Numbered from the whole stretch's first letter, positions 27,150 through 48,170 are shown. The stretch is 63,554 nucleotides of DNA, filler included, from Octopus bimaculoides (GCF_001194135.2; 5 parts of 4 records of this genome joined end to end with filler, not necessarily neighbours in it), one strand, 5' to 3'. The notes: generated by a model not told the origin, from the letters alone. Made by a program: numbers and translations.

Positions 27150-27900
27150 ATGGTCACTCCTTGACCGACCACGACCAGCAACCTTTTGAGTATATATATA
27201 TATATACCGGGTCCTAACACGCGCAGAAGGAAGCGCCGCAGAAATATCATTTGCTTTGCACCCCTCTTCTCCGTCAACGTAAAACCGTGTGTAGGTACGA
27301 TGTTCCTCAGGTTAGTTGACAAACACTTTACACGTTCAAATAAGTACGGATGCATTTTCAACAGACACAATTTAAGGGTTTCTTTTAGCTGCGTCCCTGA
27401 TATTAAGAACATTCTAGTCAATTCCGGCAACACGTTCAAACAGCGCCTCTCCACAGTTTCTCTTTGATGATCCTGGAAAGGAGATCCGCTACGTCCTTCG
27501 CCAGCCATGTATGGCGGCTGAAAGACAATGAAACCCCACACATAGTATCATGGAAGGTCCTAGAAACTCCCTACAAAAATGGGACTAAGCGTTGTAAACT
27601 GTGCATGAACGGGCGATGACATTAATGGACTTCCTGGACCTGGGGAACATCCTTAACTCCAGAACAGAAGTCTTCAGACCCTGCTTGCACTTACCGAAAT
27701 TCCTGCTGGCGTCCTGGGATCCACACGCCAACATGGTCAATTAATTAGTGGTCAAAGGGAGGCAATCCCTTGTTGTTAGCGGAGTAACGAAGTCTTTCTT
27801 CCCCCATTTTCTAGAGAGACCATAGGCCAATGGGTTTTAGGAGCTGAAGAAACGCTGTGAAGCTAAGCACTTTATGGACATGAAACCCAGGATTGTACCA
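27150..27900 (+). mobile_element. Penelope-like element, RT-thumb/linker fused by deletion to GIY-YIG
   Basis: RKRRRNIICFAPLFSVNVK..FLRLVDKHF..IFNRHNLRVSFSC, then NTFKQR..VSWKVLE..NGTKRCKLC. Confidence 0.85.
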
Positions 27901-27986
27901 TAGATTGGCCATGTCTATCTTTATCTCTATAACTCTACTTCTCTATAACCTAAAGTGTGCTTCTGTTTCGGATTTATGATTTACTG

Positions 27987-28040
<54 letters not shown>

Positions 28041-28834
28041 NNNNNNNNNNNNNNNNNNNNNNNNNNNNNNNNNNNNNNNNNNNNNNNNNNNNNNNNNNNN
28101 NNNNNNNNNNNNNNNNNNNNNNNNNNNNNNNNNNNNNNNNNNNNNNNNNNNNNNNNNNNNNNNNNNNNNNNNNNNNNNNNNNNNNNNNNNNNNNNNNNNN
28201 NNNNNNNNNNNNNNNNNNNNNNNNNNNNNNNNNNNNNNNNNNNNNNNNNNNNNNNNNNNNNNNNNNNNNNNNNNNNNNNNNNNNNNNNNNNNNNNNNNNN
28301 NNNNNNNNNNNNNNNNNNNNNNNNNNNNNNNNNNNNNNNNNNNNNNNNNNNNNNNNNNNNNNNNNNNNNNNNNNNNNNNNNNNNNNNNNNNNNNNNNNNN
28401 NNNNNNNNNNNNNNNNNNNNNNNNNNNNNNNNNNNNNNNNNNNNNNNNNNNNNNNNNNNNNNNNNNNNNNNNNNNNNNNNNNNNNNNNNNNNNNNNNNNN
28501 NNNNNNNNNNNNNNNNNNNNNNNNNNNNNNNNNNNNNNNNNNNNNNNNNNNNNNNNNNNNNNNNNNNNNNNNNNNNNNNNNNNNNNNNNNNNNNNNNNNN
28601 NNNNNNNNNNNNNNNNNNNNNNNNNNNNNNNNNNNNNNNNNNNNNNNNNNNNNNNNNNNNNNNNNNNNNNNNNNNNNNNNNNNNNNNNNNNNNNNNNNNN
28701 NNNNNNNNNNNNNNNNNNNNNNNNNNNNNNNNNNNNNNNNNNNNNNNNNNNNNNNNNNNNNNNNNNNNNNNNNNNNNNNNNNNNNNNNNNNNNNNNNNNN
28801 NNNNNNNNNNNNNNNNNNNNNNNNNNNNNNNNNN

Positions 28835-28923
28835 AGTTCGGGAAAAGTTGAATCCATTGACTTGGTTAATTGTTGGATAAAATTACTACAGTTGTAACAG
28901 GAAGGGTACACTGAGTTGTTACA
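28835..28923 (-). CDS. Exon 3 (partial, runs into gap) of secreted helical cytokine/hormone-like gene
   Basis: Acceptor aatttatttcattttttag|; phase 0 open frame CNNSVYPSCYNCSNFIQQLTKSMDSTFPE(L), compatible with exon 2. Confidence 0.7.
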
Positions 28924-29532
28924 CTAAAAAATGAAATAAATTACATTAATTACATAATATTAATTACTTCATAATTAGCTAAACAAGATAGAAATCGATT
29001 AGAGGTGTTTCGTGTTTTTTTTTTATCTCTCAATGATTAAGAGGAGTTGTTTTTATAAGAATTTTTATCAAGAAATAATTATTGATTTGAAAAAGTCTTA
29101 GCAATTGGTAAACTAGAAAGTTGTAGAAGATAGGACATGATCGTAGAGGGATGAAAAATGATACATTTAACTTTGATGTCGTTCGATCTCGTAACCTGAA
29201 AACTTAACCAAATACGATGAGGTAAGTGGTTCAGTATTTTACTATTTCTGTCAAACAATCGATCATGCAGCACAGTAATTTCCGATATTGCCATCGAACA
29301 TACACAATCGATTAAATTGATCTCCAGTATATTACTAGTGACTGGTCAATCGTTCACGGAAGGATGAAGCCCTAGTTACTAATTTATCGCCCAGAAAGGA
29401 TTAATGACAAAGTCAAATCTGGTGAGATTTGAACTTAGAAAATAAATTAAATTAAATACCACAAGGTATTTCGTTGGTCCCTCAACCGCCATTCCATAAT
29501 TAATTTTTTTTAAACATATAATTATTACTTAC

Positions 29533-29687
29533 ATAATACTGTAATACGTTTCCAACTACAACTCTTGTCATTTTCGATGATTCTCTTGCTGAAGTGATGA
29601 GTTCATCTGTGGCCGACGAAGGAATTGGTGAGCCAAGAATTTGTAAAGCATAACTGCATAGCAATACGACGGTGATGAAACGGCAAA
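29533..29687 (-). CDS. Exon 2 of secreted helical cytokine/hormone-like gene (signal peptide plus predicted helix A)
   Basis: Acceptor tctttgcattatgccttatcgttccag|, donor TAT|gtaagt; 155 nt, phase 1 to 0; (V)CRFITVVLLCSYALQILGSPIPSSATDELITSARESSKMTRVVVGNVLQYY. Confidence 0.8.
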
Positions 29688-29967
29688 CTGGAACGATAAG
29701 GCATAATGCAAAGATTATTTTTACTTCGATATGTGTGTGTATAAGTGTGTGTGTATAAGTGTGTGTGTATAATGCAAAGATCATTTTTATTTCGATGTGT
29801 GTGTGTGTGTGTGTATACAAGTGTGTATGTGTGTGTTTGTGTGAGTGTGGGACGAGTATATATCTTGGAGCCCCGTCACCAAAAAGAAAAACAAACAGTA
29901 GAAAGAAAAATCATTGTTATTTGCCGAGAAGAAAATAATGTACAGAAAGCGAAAAATCTGATCTTAC

Positions 29968-29971
29968 CCAT
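29968..29971 (-). CDS. Exon 1 coding part (ATG-G) of the same gene
   Basis: ccacaATGG|gtaaga: good Kozak context followed by a phase-1 donor; joins exon 2 in frame to give MVCRF..; 280-bp intron. Confidence 0.7.
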
Positions 29972-30120
29972 TGTGGATATTCGTGCTTTTGTCAGTGAAG
30001 TGTACAATTGACTATGTCTACCTAGTGTAGCTGTTTTGTTGTAAGGTCGGCGTTAATTTGAAGCTTCAAGATAGTTACCAAGGCGAGATTGTGACCAAAT
30101 GCAAACCTTTGAGTTTGTGA

Positions 30121-30151: not shown

Positions 30152-30817
30152 GCAGCTTGTTTCTAATTTTTAAACAGAAATTTGAACCTCACTGGATTTC
30201 GTTGCATTTCAACACGGAACAATTTCAACCCTTAAACCAGGAATTCTGATGTTTAGGATTTAGTTACCAAGAATAGCCATATATAGTAGGTCGCCAAATG
30301 TTAATGTGTGGGTGCGAATATTGATGAGAGCGCATGTGTGTGTGTGTGTGTGTGTGTGTTTGTTTCACAATCGTACATCGAGACCATGTAGCTGGGGTTT
30401 AGTGGACCAAAGTGTTCCGTTTAGTTTACAAAGAAACTCGTCGAAATAACTTTAGGAAGTTAAATAGGAAAGATGATAGAGGTTTGTGCCGAAGGTTTAT
30501 TATGAAATACGTTTCTTCCATTGAAATTGTAACTTTTATTTTTTTTTCCTATCAGGATTTCTTAGATCTTTCAATCAATAAACGTAAAGAAACGAAAGTT
30601 GTTCAGTTTCTTTGTAATTCTCCTTCATTTTAATCAACGAGGAGGTGAAATAAATTTCAAGAAACAGATTCGTCTTTTGTCATTTTCTCTTATTTTGAAT
30701 TGACTTTACTTAGGCGTTACAATTCATTTCAGAGCTTTAATCTTAAGCCTGGTAATTATTCCAAAGGTCTCTTCTGTCGAACTGCTAAGTTACAGGAACG
30801 TAAACAAATACAAGCAC

Positions 30818-31095: not shown

Positions 31096-31494
31096 ATAAA
31101 CTCAACAAAATTGTCGATATTTTGCTTTTCTGGTCGACTTTCATGTTGGAAATCCATGATAAAGAATCTGTGAAGAGGTGCAGCTCTGACAACATAAGTT
31201 GTACGGAATCAACAATGGTGTCAGCAGAACTGTCCGAAATGAGTAGCGGTCTATGAAAAGATGATCAGAGAGACTGCTCACTGCTGACCTGTGGAATTGT
31301 GTCCAACAACGGTGATTGCGTGTGGTGGACAGATTTTGATGTTGTCCGAGTTAGTTTGAAATATCTCTCTGTTACCTTCGATCAGAAATGAATGACAGCT
31401 GTTTCTTTTGCTTAAGGGCCACGGCGGAAGAGACTGAAGGTTTGAACTGCCAAATCTTCATTAGCTGCTTTAAGTGCTACGTGAATATTCTTCT

Positions 31495-31703
31495 CTACTC
31501 TAGGCACAAGGCCCGAAATCTTAGGAGAAGGGGCCAGTCGATTAGATCGACCCCAGTACGCAACTGGTGCTTAATTTATCGACCCCGAAAGGATGAAAGG
31601 TAAAGTCGACCTCGGCGGAATTTGAACTCAGAACGTAAAGACAGACGAAATACCGCTAAGCATTTCGCCCGGCGCGATAACGTTTCTGCTAGCTCACCAC
31701 CTT
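31495..31703 (-). mobile_element. SINE family A
   Basis: Matches 24860-25030. Confidence 0.9.
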
Positions 31704-32134
31704 AGTGCCACATGAATATTAAATACAAAATGGAGAGTGAAATCCTGTCCTCTAGAAAATTGGAGAAAAGGTGAATGGGTAGCGACTTTGGTGTGTCTGG
31801 ACGGATTTCTGCAAAGTTTCCGTTTCTATTTACACAGCAAACAGGAAAATCAGCCTTTTGTGTTTAGGATCAACTCAGAATTTGGGATACGCATTGATTT
31901 CTCATCTGTCACTGGTCAGTTCCGTAAACGTCACCTATACTTTATTTTATTCCTATTTTTGTTTTAATACCAAATTCAGGTTCTCTAATATCGATTCCCT
32001 TCCCTCCCCCCACCGTTGATTTCAATATCTCACATTCACTGATTTTATCCCTAATCCATTCATCTTTTAATGACTTTCGTTCATTGAACTTGATATATAT
32101 ATATATAAAGCCATCCTTCTGGAGTCAATAAAAG

Positions 32135-32957: not shown

Positions 32958-33284
32958 GTTTATCTTTTATTCTTTTACTTGTTTCAGTAAATTGACTGCG
33001 GCCATGTTGGAGCACCACCTTTAGTCGAACAAATCGACCCCAGGACTTATTCTTTGTAAGCTTGGTGGTGGTGGTGGTGGTGGTGGGGACAAACGCAGAC
33101 ACAAAAATACATACATACATATATATACGACAGGCTTCTTCCGGTTTCCGTCTACCGAATCCAATCACAAGGCTTTGGTCGGCCCGAGACTATAGTAGAA
33201 GACACTTGCCCAAGGTACCACGTAGTGGGACTGAACCCGGAACCATGTGGTTGGGAAGCAAGCTTCTTACCACACAGCCACTCC
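32958..33284 (-). mobile_element. SINE family B with internal simple repeat
   Basis: Head, CORE-like module and tail all present on minus. Confidence 0.85.
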
Positions 33285-33329
33285 TGGAAGAAATTAAGAA
33301 ATTTAATATTAAATTTAGAATTTGCACAC

Positions 33330-33510
33330 CGGGTAGAGTGCCTCGCGGTATTTTGTCCCTCCTTACGTTCTGAGTTCAAATACCGCTGTGGTTGACTTTG
33401 CCTTTCAACCTTTCGGGGTCGATAAGATAAGTACCAGTGATACACTGGGGTCGATGTAATCGGCTTACCCCATCCCCCGAAATTGCTGGCCTTGATCCAA
33501 AATTTGAAGT
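33330..33510 (+). mobile_element. SINE family A, diverged
   Basis: cgttctgagttcaaat..ctttcaacctttcggggtcgataa..gtaccag. Confidence 0.8.
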
Positions 33511-33819
33511 TATTATTAAATTTAGAATTAAGATAGGAAAAAACCTTTAAGAATCGGCCACAACAGTTTAGTAACGGGACCCAAAAACTTACAAACGGTT
33601 TGTAAATTCTGGGAATAAAGGAGAGTTCCTTCCAGTTAGCTTTATAAATTATACTCTACTTGCAAACCTAGCGACCTACCTTAATTGCTATTCTGCACCT
33701 AGCGACCCACCTGCTTTCCAAGTATCTCATATCAATTCAATACATACGCACGTGCGCGAACGAGTGAGCTTGCGCGTATGTGCACATACATACACACGTA
33801 TGTATACGTACAAAGGCGA

Positions 33820-33946: not shown

Positions 33947-34730
33947 NNNNNNNNNNNNNNNNNNNNNNNNNNNNNNNNNNNNNNNNNNNNNNNNNNNNNN
34001 NNNNNNNNNNNNNNNNNNNNNNNNNNNNNNNNNNNNNNNNNNNNNNNNNNNNNNNNNNNNNNNNNNNNNNNNNNNNNNNNNNNNNNNNNNNNNNNNNNNN
34101 NNNNNNNNNNNNNNNNNNNNNNNNNNNNNNNNNNNNNNNNNNNNNNNNNNNNNNNNNNNNNNNNNNNNNNNNNNNNNNNNNNNNNNNNNNNNNNNNNNNN
34201 NNNNNNNNNNNNNNNNNNNNNNNNNNNNNNNNNNNNNNNNNNNNNNNNNNNNNNNNNNNNNNNNNNNNNNNNNNNNNNNNNNNNNNNNNNNNNNNNNNNN
34301 NNNNNNNNNNNNNNNNNNNNNNNNNNNNNNNNNNNNNNNNNNNNNNNNNNNNNNNNNNNNNNNNNNNNNNNNNNNNNNNNNNNNNNNNNNNNNNNNNNNN
34401 NNNNNNNNNNNNNNNNNNNNNNNNNNNNNNNNNNNNNNNNNNNNNNNNNNNNNNNNNNNNNNNNNNNNNNNNNNNNNNNNNNNNNNNNNNNNNNNNNNNN
34501 NNNNNNNNNTGTGTGTGTGTGTGTGTATGTTTGTGTGTCTGTGGTTGCCCCCCACCATCGCTTGACAACCGATGTTGGTGTGTTTACGTCCCTATAACTT
34601 AGTGGTTCGGCATAATTGACCGATAGAATAAGTACTAGGCTTACAAAGAATAAGTCCTGGAGTCGATTTGCTCGACTAAAGGCGGTGCTGCAGCATGGCC
34701 GCAGTCAAATGACTGAAACAAGTAAAAGAA
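33820..34730 (+). mobile_element. SINE family B split by an expanded internal microsatellite and gap
   Basis: 5' body ends gaaagaagcccgtcg at 33896; 3' body resumes gtctgtggttgccccc at 34538. Confidence 0.85.
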
Positions 34731-34989
34731 AGACATACGAACGTACACGTGAATATATATATGCATATGTATATATACAAGCATACATATATACACACAT
34801 AAACACACACACACACACACACACACAGATATATATGGATGTGTGTATATACAAAGCATACATATATGCATATGTATATATACAAGCATACATATACATA
34901 TATATAAACACACACATACATATGCGCACATACGGGTATATACGTATGTATAAGTACGCATACATGCATATACACAAACATGCATACAT

Positions 34990-43523: not shown

Positions 43524-44290
43524 CAGAAAATTAGTTTACCTAATTTTCCTTCTTTCACTGGTGACGTCACGCTTTGGTTCGCACAGTTGGATGCGTACAT
43601 TGCGGCACATGCTGTGCCTTCCCCGCGACAGCTAAATCGTCTCCTTTGTAACATTCCTGCGCCACTTGCTACTTCCGTCAGGGATCTCATCACAGATCCT
43701 CGCCCGGATGCGACGTACGAGGTGGTCAAATCCGAGGTTCTCCGGCGGAACACTAAATCCGCAGAGTTTAAGCAGCTAATGCAGGACGAGGAGCTAAGAG
43801 ACAGGACGCTGTCTCAGTTTTTACGGCATCTCCGCGAACTCAGCGACACGACTGAGGACAACTCGCTCTTACGGAAGCTTTTCTTCTCCCGGCTACCTCC
43901 CAATATGCAAATTATTTTAGCCACAGCGGGTGATACCAACACCGTGGATCAACTAGCAACCATGGCTGATAAAACTTTAGGGTTCGCTATCCAGCCAGCT
44001 CCTCGTCATGTCTGCTCTTGCTCAGAGGTCTCTTCTGCTGCATCTTCCTCATCACATGATGAGATTGTGGAGTAACTCGACTCCTTAACACTCCCAATGG
44101 ACGCGCTTTGGCGAGGGCGCTCCAACTCTTCGCGCTGTCGCAGTCGGAGCCGGTCTCGTTCACGCTCGACCGATTCTTTTTCCTCTAGTCCCAGTCTTTG
44201 TTGGTACCACGCCAGGTATCAGCATAATGTCCGCAAATGCATTCAGCCTTGTTCTTTCCAATCGTCGGAAAACGCCCAGCGGAGGGTTTG
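43524..44290 (+). pseudogene. gag: Gypsy gag (stop at 44073-44075)
   Basis: SLPNF..LWFAQLDAY..VRDLI..EELRDRTLSQFLR..LFFSRLP..LATMAD; CWYH..RKC..PC knuckle. Confidence 0.85.
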
Positions 44291-44806
44291 AGCACGTCAA
44301 ACACTTCCAACCAATTATCCTCAAATCGTGCATTTTTTGTAAAGGATCGTGTGTCTGGTAAAGCGTTTATGGTCGACGCAGGTTCTAGTTGCTCTATTTG
44401 GCCTTTGCGTCTCGCTACAGACGAGCCAAAGCGTTCAGAGATCGCCTTGCATGCGGTCAACTGGTCTCCCATTATAACTTACGGTCAAGTTTCCTTACAT
44501 ATTGACATTAATCTTCGCCGGGATTTTAGGTGGATTTTTGTCATAGCTGATCTCCCACGTCCTATTCTGGGTGCGGACTTTTTGAACAATTTTAACCTAT
44601 TTGTAGATGTCAGGCGACAGACTCGTCGACGGTTCTACGTCTTTGTCTACACCTGCAAAAGCCACTACCAATGCTGTTCTCAGTCGTTCATCAGCGATTC
44701 CAAACGGCAAAACTTACTCACTCGACCCTCCACTATATTACCACCACTGGGCCACCTGTCTTTTCACACCCGCGGCGACTTGCTCCTGACCGTCTTAAGA
44801 AGGCTT
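44290..44806 (+). pseudogene. pol: Gypsy aspartic protease and start of RT
   Basis: FMVDAGSS, ILGADFL, then ITTTGPPVFSHPRRLAPDRL after frameshifts; ends at gap. Confidence 0.85.
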
Positions 44807-46499: not shown

Positions 46500-48170
46500 G
46501 ATGGACAGACAGAACAAAACTGCCACGGTGTCATACTTAGATGAACTGTGCGACAAAACTGGTCGCTGTCCCAAAATAGAGCATTGCCCGGCAAATCACA
46601 TCTGTCATCTATGCACAGAACTCGAAAATTCCTTCCGAAATAGATGGGTTGAATGCAGTAAATGTCGTGTTTCGATCTACTTTCAATGTGCCACAAACTT
46701 TCAAAAGATCCCAGGTCAAAAAAAAAAGAAAAAGAAAAAAAAGGACACCACACTTTTATGATCTACAGGCATTTACTGGCAACACATCTAAGGACCTAAG
46801 CTGTGTTCCTCCAAAAAGTGCTTTCCGCTTTGGCCGACCAGGATCCAAACCCAGATTGATTAGGTTGTCGTTTTCCAACTCTACTGAGGCGCGGGCATAC
46901 CATCTAGCTGCTGATAGGGCTCGGCGCGAAAACAGAATTACCTTTCGGACACGTCCTGGCCTACCACCTGATGTATGCCCAAAGCTAAGAACTGTAGCTT
47001 CCCTAAATCGTAACCCTGTGCCACAGGAAAATTCATCAAGTCTGTCTTGACAATGGTGTTACTCCAGAGCAGTGGAAAACTGTCAGTGTTATCCCTCTGT
47101 TCAAAAAAGGTGACCGCACATCGCCTGTCAACTATCAGTCTTACTAGCCTGTCAACGTCAGTCTTACTAGCTGCATCGCCAAACTGATGGAATCGTGTGT
47201 CAGAGAAAACCTCTGGAACTTCTGGAAGTCTCACAGCCTCATCCAGCCGTCACAATTTGGATTTATTCCTAACCCCAGCTGCTGTAATCAACTCATTGAG
47301 TTTCTTGAGGACATTACCCGAATCACTGATGGCGGTTCCTGGGTGGATGTTGTTTACCTTGACTTTGCTAGGGCTTTTGATTCTGTGCCACACAAAAGAC
47401 TTATGGTAAAACTCTCTGCAATGGGTGTAAGAGATGATCTCTATAACTGGTTGAAGTCCTTCATTATCGGCCGAAAAGAGGTTTGTCACAGTTCTAGGAC
47501 AGCACTCTTCACCCTATGAGATGACATCTGGTGTACCACTGGGATCTGTTCTTGGCCCCCTTTTATTTGTTGCATATATTAATGACATAGATGCCAACTT
47601 AAAGAATGCCACAGTGCTGAAATAGGCAGATGACATCAAGCTGTACCTCGAAATAAAAAGGACAGATCCTGTACACTATAGATCTTTATTGCAATCAGAC
47701 CTGGACACGATGCAGCAATGGATCATGAACTGGCATCTCAAGCTGGCTGTGGACAAATGTACCACCATGCATTTTGGGAGGAAAACCCAGCGTCTACTTA
47801 CTCCCTCCACAACACTAATCTCAAAAAATCTTTTGTGAACGTGATCTGGACATTATTGTCGACAGCGATTTGCGTTGGACAAAACACATTGCTAAAAATG
47901 CCAAGAAGGCTGAGGGTGTCTTGGCATCACTTACCAAGTCCTTTGTGAGCCGCTCTCCAGTTATCTATATAAGGCTTTATATAGCTATAGTGCGGCCTCA
48001 CCTGGAATTTGCATCTCCGGTCTGGAACCCCTATCTTGCCCAGGATATTAATCGTCTGGAAACCGTTCAGCGACGTGCAACCAAGAGAATACCCTCCATC
48101 AGGCATTTGCCATATTCTGAACGCCTTACTTCCCTGGGTATGGATACATTGGAACTCCGACGTCTGGCAG
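46500..48170 (+). mobile_element. CR1-clade LINE: ORF1 remnants joined to RT, endonuclease missing
   Basis: PHD-like CHLC..WVECSKC..C; RFGRPGSKPRLI; RT motifs QFGF, YLDFARAFDSVPH, SGVPLGSVLGP, *ADD, VRPHLEFASPVWNP, ETVQRRATK. Confidence 0.9.

Follow-up and report, generated by a model that had tools for sequence, protein, structure and literature searches.

The 5' end of an octopus gene for a predicted secreted, all-alpha protein with a possibly cytokine-like exon layout

We analysed the start of a gene on the minus strand of a 63,554-nt stretch of Octopus bimaculoides DNA (the window, in which parts of several records of this genome are joined with filler; coordinates are those of the whole stretch, and the part that carries the gene is called the piece). 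An initial annotation had described three minus-strand exons here that join in frame, with a first intron in phase 1 and a second in phase 0, and the sequence is as it was described. The coding part of exon 1 is ATGG, ending at the donor TGG/GTAAGA (a slash marks the exon boundary) and followed by a phase-1 intron. Exon 2 comprises 155 nt between the acceptor ttatcgttccag/ and the donor TAT/GTAAGT. Exon 3 follows the acceptor tttcattttttag/, and its frame stays open for 89 nt, up to a gap of N in the assembly. The joined three-exon product, MVCRF...STFPE(L), has 82-83 residues. There is no ATG between the TATA box and the start codon, and intron 1 holds (CA)n runs together with a unit of ~45 nt in two copies. 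These three exons are the true start of an octopus gene.

When the exon-2 peptide was used in an exhaustive HMMER search (phmmer), it retrieved XP_029637482.2 with E = 1.5e-18 and 87% identity over residues 2-53. This is an "uncharacterized protein" of 228 amino acids, the product of LOC115212847 of Octopus sinensis; the second and last match was a repetitive, bacterial-looking protein and is irrelevant. Identity to XP_029637482.2 amounted to 86.5% for exon 2 (residues 2-53), 83% for exon 3 (residues 54-83) and 86% over the 83 visible residues. The protein reads M/VCRF... and ...QYY/CNHSVYPSCYNCSNF... at the same two joins as the window gene (29968/29687 and 29533/28923), which independently confirms both of them. 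Orthologous exons in a related species, which the initial annotation had suggested looking for, were therefore found in O. sinensis. The 4-nt coding exon 1 is present there too, and exon 2 has the same length, acceptor and GTAAGT donor. In full, LOC115212847 has coding exons of 4, 155, 135, 231 and 162 nt, and its introns are all GT-AG with phases 1,0,0,0. Measured against the 135 nt of the O. sinensis exon, 46 nt of exon 3 are missing in the window.

The window and the LOC115212847 locus are colinear over ~10 kb (34.8 kb down to 25.0 kb of the window) at 87-92% identity. The colinear stretch runs from ~5 kb upstream of the gene to window position 25040, which equals 14769 of the O. sinensis locus, and the part of intron 3 that lies in the window aligns to 11761-14769 of that locus. 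Exons 4 and 5 gave no tblastn match within the piece. They lie beyond its edge, since the match ends at 14769 of the O. sinensis locus and exon 4 starts only at 16870. A TATA promoter is kept in both genes, and the signal peptide of LOC115212847 differs from that of the window copy at four positions. In exon 3 the window gene is closer to LOC115212847 (gene A, 83% amino-acid identity) than to a paralogue (gene B, 43%). Together with the ~10 kb of colinear flanking DNA, this indicates that the window gene is the orthologue of gene A, not of paralogue B. Table 1 lists the elements of this octopus orthologue of LOC115212847, from the promoter through three exons into its third intron.

Table 1. 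Elements of the gene and its immediate surroundings in the window.
Element	Position	Strand	Basis or remark
Conserved upstream promoter block	30152..30728	-	Four-sequence alignment and match to the paralogue B locus
TATA box TATAAAAA	30151-30144	-	Direct reading; 180 nt 5' of the ATG
Exon 1, inferred 5' untranslated region (UTR) and ATGG (29971-29968)	29968..30120	-	UTR start inferred ~30 nt past the TATA box
Intron 1, 280 nt, phase 1	29688..29967	-	Boundaries confirmed by the orthologue protein
Exon 2, signal peptide and residues 21-53 (predicted helix A)	29533..29687	-	Orthologue match
Intron 2, 609 nt, phase 0	28924..29532	-	92% identical to the O. sinensis intron
Exon 3, 89 of ~135 nt visible (start of A-B loop and mini-helix, predicted)	28835..28923	-	Orthologue match
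Assembly gap, 794 N	28041..28834		Hides the last part of exon 3 and the first part of intron 3; cuts the reading frame short
Partial intron 3 with repeat insertions	24755..28040	-	Colinear with O. sinensis intron 3, 87-89% identity

The whole piece was also scanned on both strands for exon-like segments (a pyrimidine-rich acceptor, 100-300 open nt, a GTRAGT donor and a signal-peptide-like start), and exon 2 was the sole return. Second-order Markov simulations gave a chance rate of 0.03-0.07 such exons per 22 kb, an estimate that covers exon 2 alone, before an in-phase ATGG exon, a TATA box and exon 3 are demanded. No paralogues were found within the piece.

The initial annotation had called the gene hidden. 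This holds in so far as annotation of this assembly apparently lacks the window copy, the probable cause being the assembly gap that cuts exon 3. It does not hold for O. sinensis, where the orthologue is annotated as an uncharacterized protein; RefSeq already lists orthologue and paralogue alike as uncharacterised. A database search with XP_029637482.2 brought up no A-type O. bimaculoides protein, in an index that is not fully reliable. A word-index protein search with the 83-residue peptide missed the O. sinensis orthologue, which its database contains, despite exact stretches of 10-14 residues, and its negatives for short queries are weak. Literature searches on the LOC and XP identifiers and on cephalopod helical cytokines found nothing, and for octopus they yielded nothing either on binding to a class I cytokine receptor with JAK/STAT signalling.

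Paralogue B is represented by LOC118763732 in O. sinensis (232 amino acids, full length) and by LOC128248029 in O. bimaculoides (a 171-residue model), the two falling in the same 90%-identity cluster. LOC128248029 is 63% identical to XP_029637482.2 from residue 65 onward. Its model starts at an internal methionine of exon 3, truncated because exons 1-2 fall in a 414-N assembly gap (locus 7883-8296; GCA_001194135.2, CM046606.1). The coding exons of B measure 4, 170, 135, 231 and 159 nt with phases 1,0,0,0 as in A, and LOC118763732 shares with A the signal peptide, the SPIPS start and six conserved cysteines. Genes A and B of O. sinensis lie on one chromosome, ~51 Mb apart. In these searches the family comprises two genes, so far seen only in Octopus (two species).

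No part of the locus is better conserved than the promoter. Over ~150 nt 5' of the TATA box, ~95% of the columns are identical in an alignment of window A, O. sinensis A and B and O. bimaculoides B, and the TATA box is found in all four sequences, in one with an extra A. Within O. bimaculoides, window positions 30728-30013 and 29455-29074 (promoter and intron 2) are 96% identical to positions 7180-7882 and 8297-8678 of the LOC128248029 locus. A 7-nt deletion is common to the window and O. bimaculoides B and occurs in neither O. sinensis copy. From this identity and the common deletion we infer homogenisation of the A and B 5' regions in the lineage of O. bimaculoides. An identity of 96% in promoter and intron 2 against 43% in exon 3 suggests that the 5' region has undergone gene conversion or that selection has been very uneven.

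Between A and B, amino-acid identity is 82% in exon 4 and 46-58% in mature exon 2, exon 3 and exon 5. Rates of divergence were obtained by comparing the LOC115212847 and LOC118763732 loci of O. sinensis. The ratio of nonsynonymous to synonymous substitution rates (dN/dS) was 0.69 in mature exon 2, 1.36 in exon 3 and 1.14 in exon 5, and 0.34 in exon 4. At the nucleotide level mature exon 2, exon 3 and exon 5 are 70-72% identical. Intron and promoter blocks are mostly 84-95% identical, and one block that also spans exon 4 stands at 77%. That mature exon 2 and exons 3 and 5 are less alike than most introns points to diversifying selection on particular exons. Purifying selection on exon 4 is clear by the same measure.

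As judged from the orthologue, the precursor has 228 residues, with a 20-residue signal peptide and a mature chain of ~208 residues, a length inside the ~160-210 residues of long-chain class I helical cytokines. The signal peptide carries an arginine at position 4, a hydrophobic core of 12 residues and G or A at position -1, and is followed by the conserved SPIPS. The claim that the gene encodes a secreted protein is supported by this signal-peptide-like start and by the conservation of SPIPS in the orthologue. Gene A encodes five N-glycosylation sequons and gene B seven. The six conserved cysteines are 54, 65, 127, 137, 143 and 156 in XP_029637482.2 numbering, and C62 is specific to A, the paralogue having a glycine there. 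The protein is predicted to be secreted, glycosylated, disulfide-bonded and all-alpha.

AlphaFold2 was run once for each paralogue, on alignments of two and three sequences. The resulting models had a predicted local distance difference test score (pLDDT) of 44.0 with a predicted template modelling score (pTM) of 0.38, and a pLDDT of 40.6 with a pTM of 0.33. Both of these low-confidence models are all-alpha, with helices at ~29-55, 65-79, 94-126, 150-180 and 203-227. DSSP applied to the two models (pLDDT 41-44, hence low confidence) gave four long helices, A to D, of 27, 33, 31 and 25 residues, separated by loops of 38, 23 and 22 residues; the mini-helix (65-79) sits, in the same tentative models, in the 38-residue A-B loop. 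The cysteines are confined to the stretch that runs from the end of helix A to where helix C starts, with none after residue 156 and none in helix D or the C-terminus. In Foldseek searches against the PDB with these unreliable query models, the best E values were 0.39 and 0.61 and the template modelling (TM) score was at most ~0.3 among the top matches. With the same unreliable queries there was no cytokine among the top matches, and prolactin ranked 36th with a TM score of 0.17. Since the query models are unreliable, the Foldseek result speaks neither for nor against an up-up-down-down four-helix bundle.

We then compared the placement of the introns with that of the predicted helices. The initial annotation had pointed to a tiny ATG-G exon with a phase-1 intron and to a second exon that carries the signal peptide and a predicted first helix and ends in phase 0, and this was borne out. 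In the orthologue the introns follow residues 53, 98 and 175. Their offsets from the predicted helix limits are -2 residues for the end of helix A, +4 for the start of helix B and -5 for the end of helix C. The probability that three uniformly placed introns would land in this way is P ~9e-4, with helix limits taken from the low-confidence models. Helix A would thus fall in exon 2, the A-B loop with the mini-helix in exon 3, both helix B and helix C in exon 4, and helix D, with the C-D loop before it, in exon 5.

Growth hormone (GH), prolactin (PRL), EPO and IL-6/G-CSF genes have introns at matching helix boundaries, in phases 1,0,0,0. The octopus protein resembles GH, PRL, EPO, IL-6 and G-CSF in being a predicted secreted glycoprotein, in its length of ~200 residues and in a tiny first coding exon with one phase-1 intron followed by three of phase 0. 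It resembles them also in its exon-to-helix layout, where the octopus helices are predicted ones. GH exon 3 encodes residues 32-71, the loop between helix 1 and helix 2 (PMC6878336). The octopus protein differs from the vertebrate long-chain cytokines in its disulfide pattern and its long B-C loop, and it has no sequence or profile similarity to them, its fold being a low-confidence prediction and its receptor putative.

This absence of similarity was seen in the database and profile comparisons. In Pfam, no family was found at E<=10 for any family member, cytokine and hormone families included. Sequence and profile searches of PDB chains gave no meaningful match, the best being a nitroreductase and a calbindin with E values of 0.16-1.1. 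When the family alignment was compared by hhalign with ten human helical cytokines, probabilities of 0.0-0.6% were obtained, the same as for a myoglobin control (the reference sequences of the ten cytokines and myoglobin were entered by hand). The class I helical cytokine/hormone-like architecture that had been proposed for this gene is in keeping with the five exons, the 1,0,0,0 phases and the introns at predicted helix ends; a family match is not supported.

Our tentative interpretation, in which we place slightly less than even confidence, is that the gene encodes a long-chain four-helix bundle acting as an extracellular ligand. A cytokine-like architecture is in the same measure plausible, if unproven. 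The mature protein would fold as four long helices with the mini-helix in the long A-B loop, and the predicted secreted ligand would bind a cell-surface receptor. Its fast-evolving faces (helix A, the A-B loop and helix D) may set receptor specificity, and the conserved B/C core may hold the fold. In GH, receptor site I is formed by helix A, the A-B loop and helix D. The fastest-diverged regions of the octopus pair match this site, as would be expected of duplicated ligands gaining different receptor specificities. Among protostomes, the Unpaired proteins of Drosophila (Upd1-3) are characterised helical cytokines, which are secreted, glycosylated and predicted to be helical and are unlike vertebrate cytokines in sequence. 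As so described, they offer a precedent for what the octopus protein could be; by description they are also set apart from it, at about twice its length. A common ancestor with the vertebrate helical cytokines is possible.

Several observations weigh against this interpretation. Homologues are known only from two Octopus species, and the Pfam, PDB and hhalign comparisons revealed no likeness in sequence or profile to a cytokine or to any other family. The structural models are of low confidence, with no Foldseek match better than E = 0.39. Alpha-helical amphipathic periodicity is significant only in the mini-helix and helix B, not in the other three helices (A, C and D). The long B-C loop, with its 23 residues and three cysteines, is unlike that of typical long-chain cytokines, and helix D is without a cysteine anchor. 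Finally, the exon-to-helix comparison was framed after the data had been seen, and its helix limits come from the low-confidence models.

The main rival interpretation, only slightly less probable, is that the gene encodes a secreted alpha-helical glycoprotein restricted to this lineage and other than a cytokine. Such a protein could belong to saliva or venom, serve reproduction or act as a pheromone, or be part of mucosal defence or of a matrix, and the cytokine-like layout would be coincidental. Homology outside Octopus was undetected, and the combination of a conserved signal peptide and introns with dN/dS >1 in exons 3 and 5 would suit such a protein. Toxins and antimicrobial and reproductive proteins typically combine a conserved signal peptide with mature exons that evolve fast, and the pattern of divergence between A and B is equally typical of salivary, reproductive and defensive proteins. 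The weak amphipathicity of three of the four long helices points the same way, and phase-1 introns in signal peptides with phase-0 introns elsewhere are common in secreted-protein genes. Coincidence would nevertheless have to account for three internal introns at most five residues from GH-type helix ends (P ~9e-4). The size of the protein, its four predicted helices of 25-33 residues and the predicted mini-helix within an A-B loop of 38 residues are in keeping with long-chain cytokines, and purifying selection on exon 4 is clear. True membership of the somatotropin/prolactin or LIF/OSM family, to which the alignments of the initial annotation pointed, is by comparison very improbable. The octopus gene has the five-exon 1,0,0,0 structure in common with these families, and helix A, when anchored at the exon end, scores slightly above shuffles (z 1.9-2.5). 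The prolactin alignment proposed for exon 2, however, contains 3 identities in 24 positions with a BLOSUM62 score of 0, the exon-end-anchored GH and LIF comparisons were no better (again 3/24), and full Smith-Waterman alignments to PRL and LIF remained within shuffle noise (LIF z = -0.44). The Hormone_1 and LIF_OSM profiles, which had been named as a check, gave no match at E<=10 in Pfam, and hhalign probabilities were 0.1% for PRL, 0.6% for GH and 0.2% for LIF. The likeness of SPIP to the SPLP of LIF extends to a motif of only four residues and is no evidence. In GH/PRL, disulfides join the A-B loop to helix D and close a small C-terminal loop, and in LIF/OSM they fasten the N-terminus and the A-B loop to helices C and D; the defining bonds that anchor helix D are impossible in the octopus protein, which has no cysteine in or after helix D. 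Membership of these families is thus largely refuted at the level of sequence.

Two further explanations concern the exons themselves. A chance open reading frame (ORF) or a dead gene fragment might be suspected in repeat-rich DNA: the DNA around the gene abounds in transposon remains and microsatellites, the open frame of exon 2 is partly (CA)n upstream of the acceptor, the gap cuts exon 3, and nucleotide identity to the orthologue is no higher in the coding sequence (92.3%) than in the introns (~92%). Against this stand an intact orthologue and two paralogue copies of identical exon structure in two species, the conserved promoter, a dN/dS against the orthologue of 0.48 over the 82 visible codons with the frame intact, and a chance expectation for exon 2 by itself of no more than 0.07 per 22 kb. 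This explanation is essentially excluded for the family, and it would apply to this copy only if a frameshift or stop in the unseen parts of exons 3-5 had made it a pseudogene. The alternative that exon 3 opens a saposin-like (SAPLIP) domain, with a CxxC motif followed by an amphipathic helix, started from PSCYNCSNFIQQLTKSMDSTF, which scored z = 2.85 when aligned on the CxxC of saposin C. We regard it as barely conceivable. The first cysteine of the motif (C62) is a glycine in the paralogue, no SapB match was found in Pfam, and the idea was rejected because the full-length sequences are without the six-cysteine saposin pattern.

Other elements of the window were recorded alongside the gene. 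A helical-looking ORF of 75 codons at 26547-26323 (-), reading ..LLLRRISFWESLFTTLADQDLFPLLVERLRTFDQRVW.., was considered as the last exon and rejected: it lies inside intron 3 and outside the coding sequence of the orthologue. It had no Pfam match, and a word-index search, a weak negative, found no homologue. Part of this ORF (26334-26494) is 91% identical to O. sinensis intron 3 in an orientation opposite to that of the flanking colinear blocks. The interval 26235-27190 measures ~950 nt; in intron 3 of O. sinensis the matches on either side of it are ~390 nt apart. This extra DNA holds a 140-codon ORF, 26995-26576 (-), that reads like the decayed GIY-YIG endonuclease tail of a Penelope-like retroelement (..YVGATENPFKQRLNNRR..LNSKREIFSRCLHQRKF), with no supporting Pfam match. 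Retrotransposon remains are found at 47187-47516 (+), 43587-44072 (+) and 44237-44806 (+). They include a reverse-transcriptase fragment (RVT_1, E = 6.6e-10) and a gag-like match to DUF7041 that is weak and misses the Pfam cut-off (E = 1.5e-4), beside which an ORF without a Pfam match reads like a retroviral-type aspartic protease. Short interspersed repeats of ~150-220 nt (24859-25035, 31481-31706, 33114-33550 and 34510-34738) match many sites in all three octopus loci compared, at 75-93% identity. Scanned against Rfam, the piece showed neither a tRNA nor any other RNA family.

Helical cytokines diverge too fast for sequence searches, and gene structure and fold are the usual handles on them. 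Vertebrates have known ligands of class I cytokine receptors, and in insects Unpaired is such a ligand. To our knowledge, the helical-cytokine side of JAK/STAT signalling in molluscs is essentially uncharacterised. In a 2022 review an oyster interferon-like protein is the sole molluscan entry (PMC9756803). The octopus family offers a concrete candidate, with a predicted cytokine-type layout and with putative receptor-facing exons that have evolved faster than most introns. One of its O. bimaculoides copies seems unannotated and the other is truncated, with assembly gaps at their 5' exons.

Should the cytokine interpretation fail, the two genes would still form a well-defined, fast-evolving, octopus-restricted family of secreted proteins. 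They would then be an orphan secreted family; if the interpretation is right, they would encode a very divergent cytokine. That this is the first lophotrochozoan family of long-chain class I helical cytokines or hormones, still with the exon-to-helix architecture of the vertebrate GH/PRL/EPO/IL-6 type, we consider doubtful, though worth stating for its consequences. If true, that architecture would be older than the protostome-deuterostome split, and the octopus proteins would supply the missing ligand for molluscan cytokine-receptor/JAK-STAT signalling.

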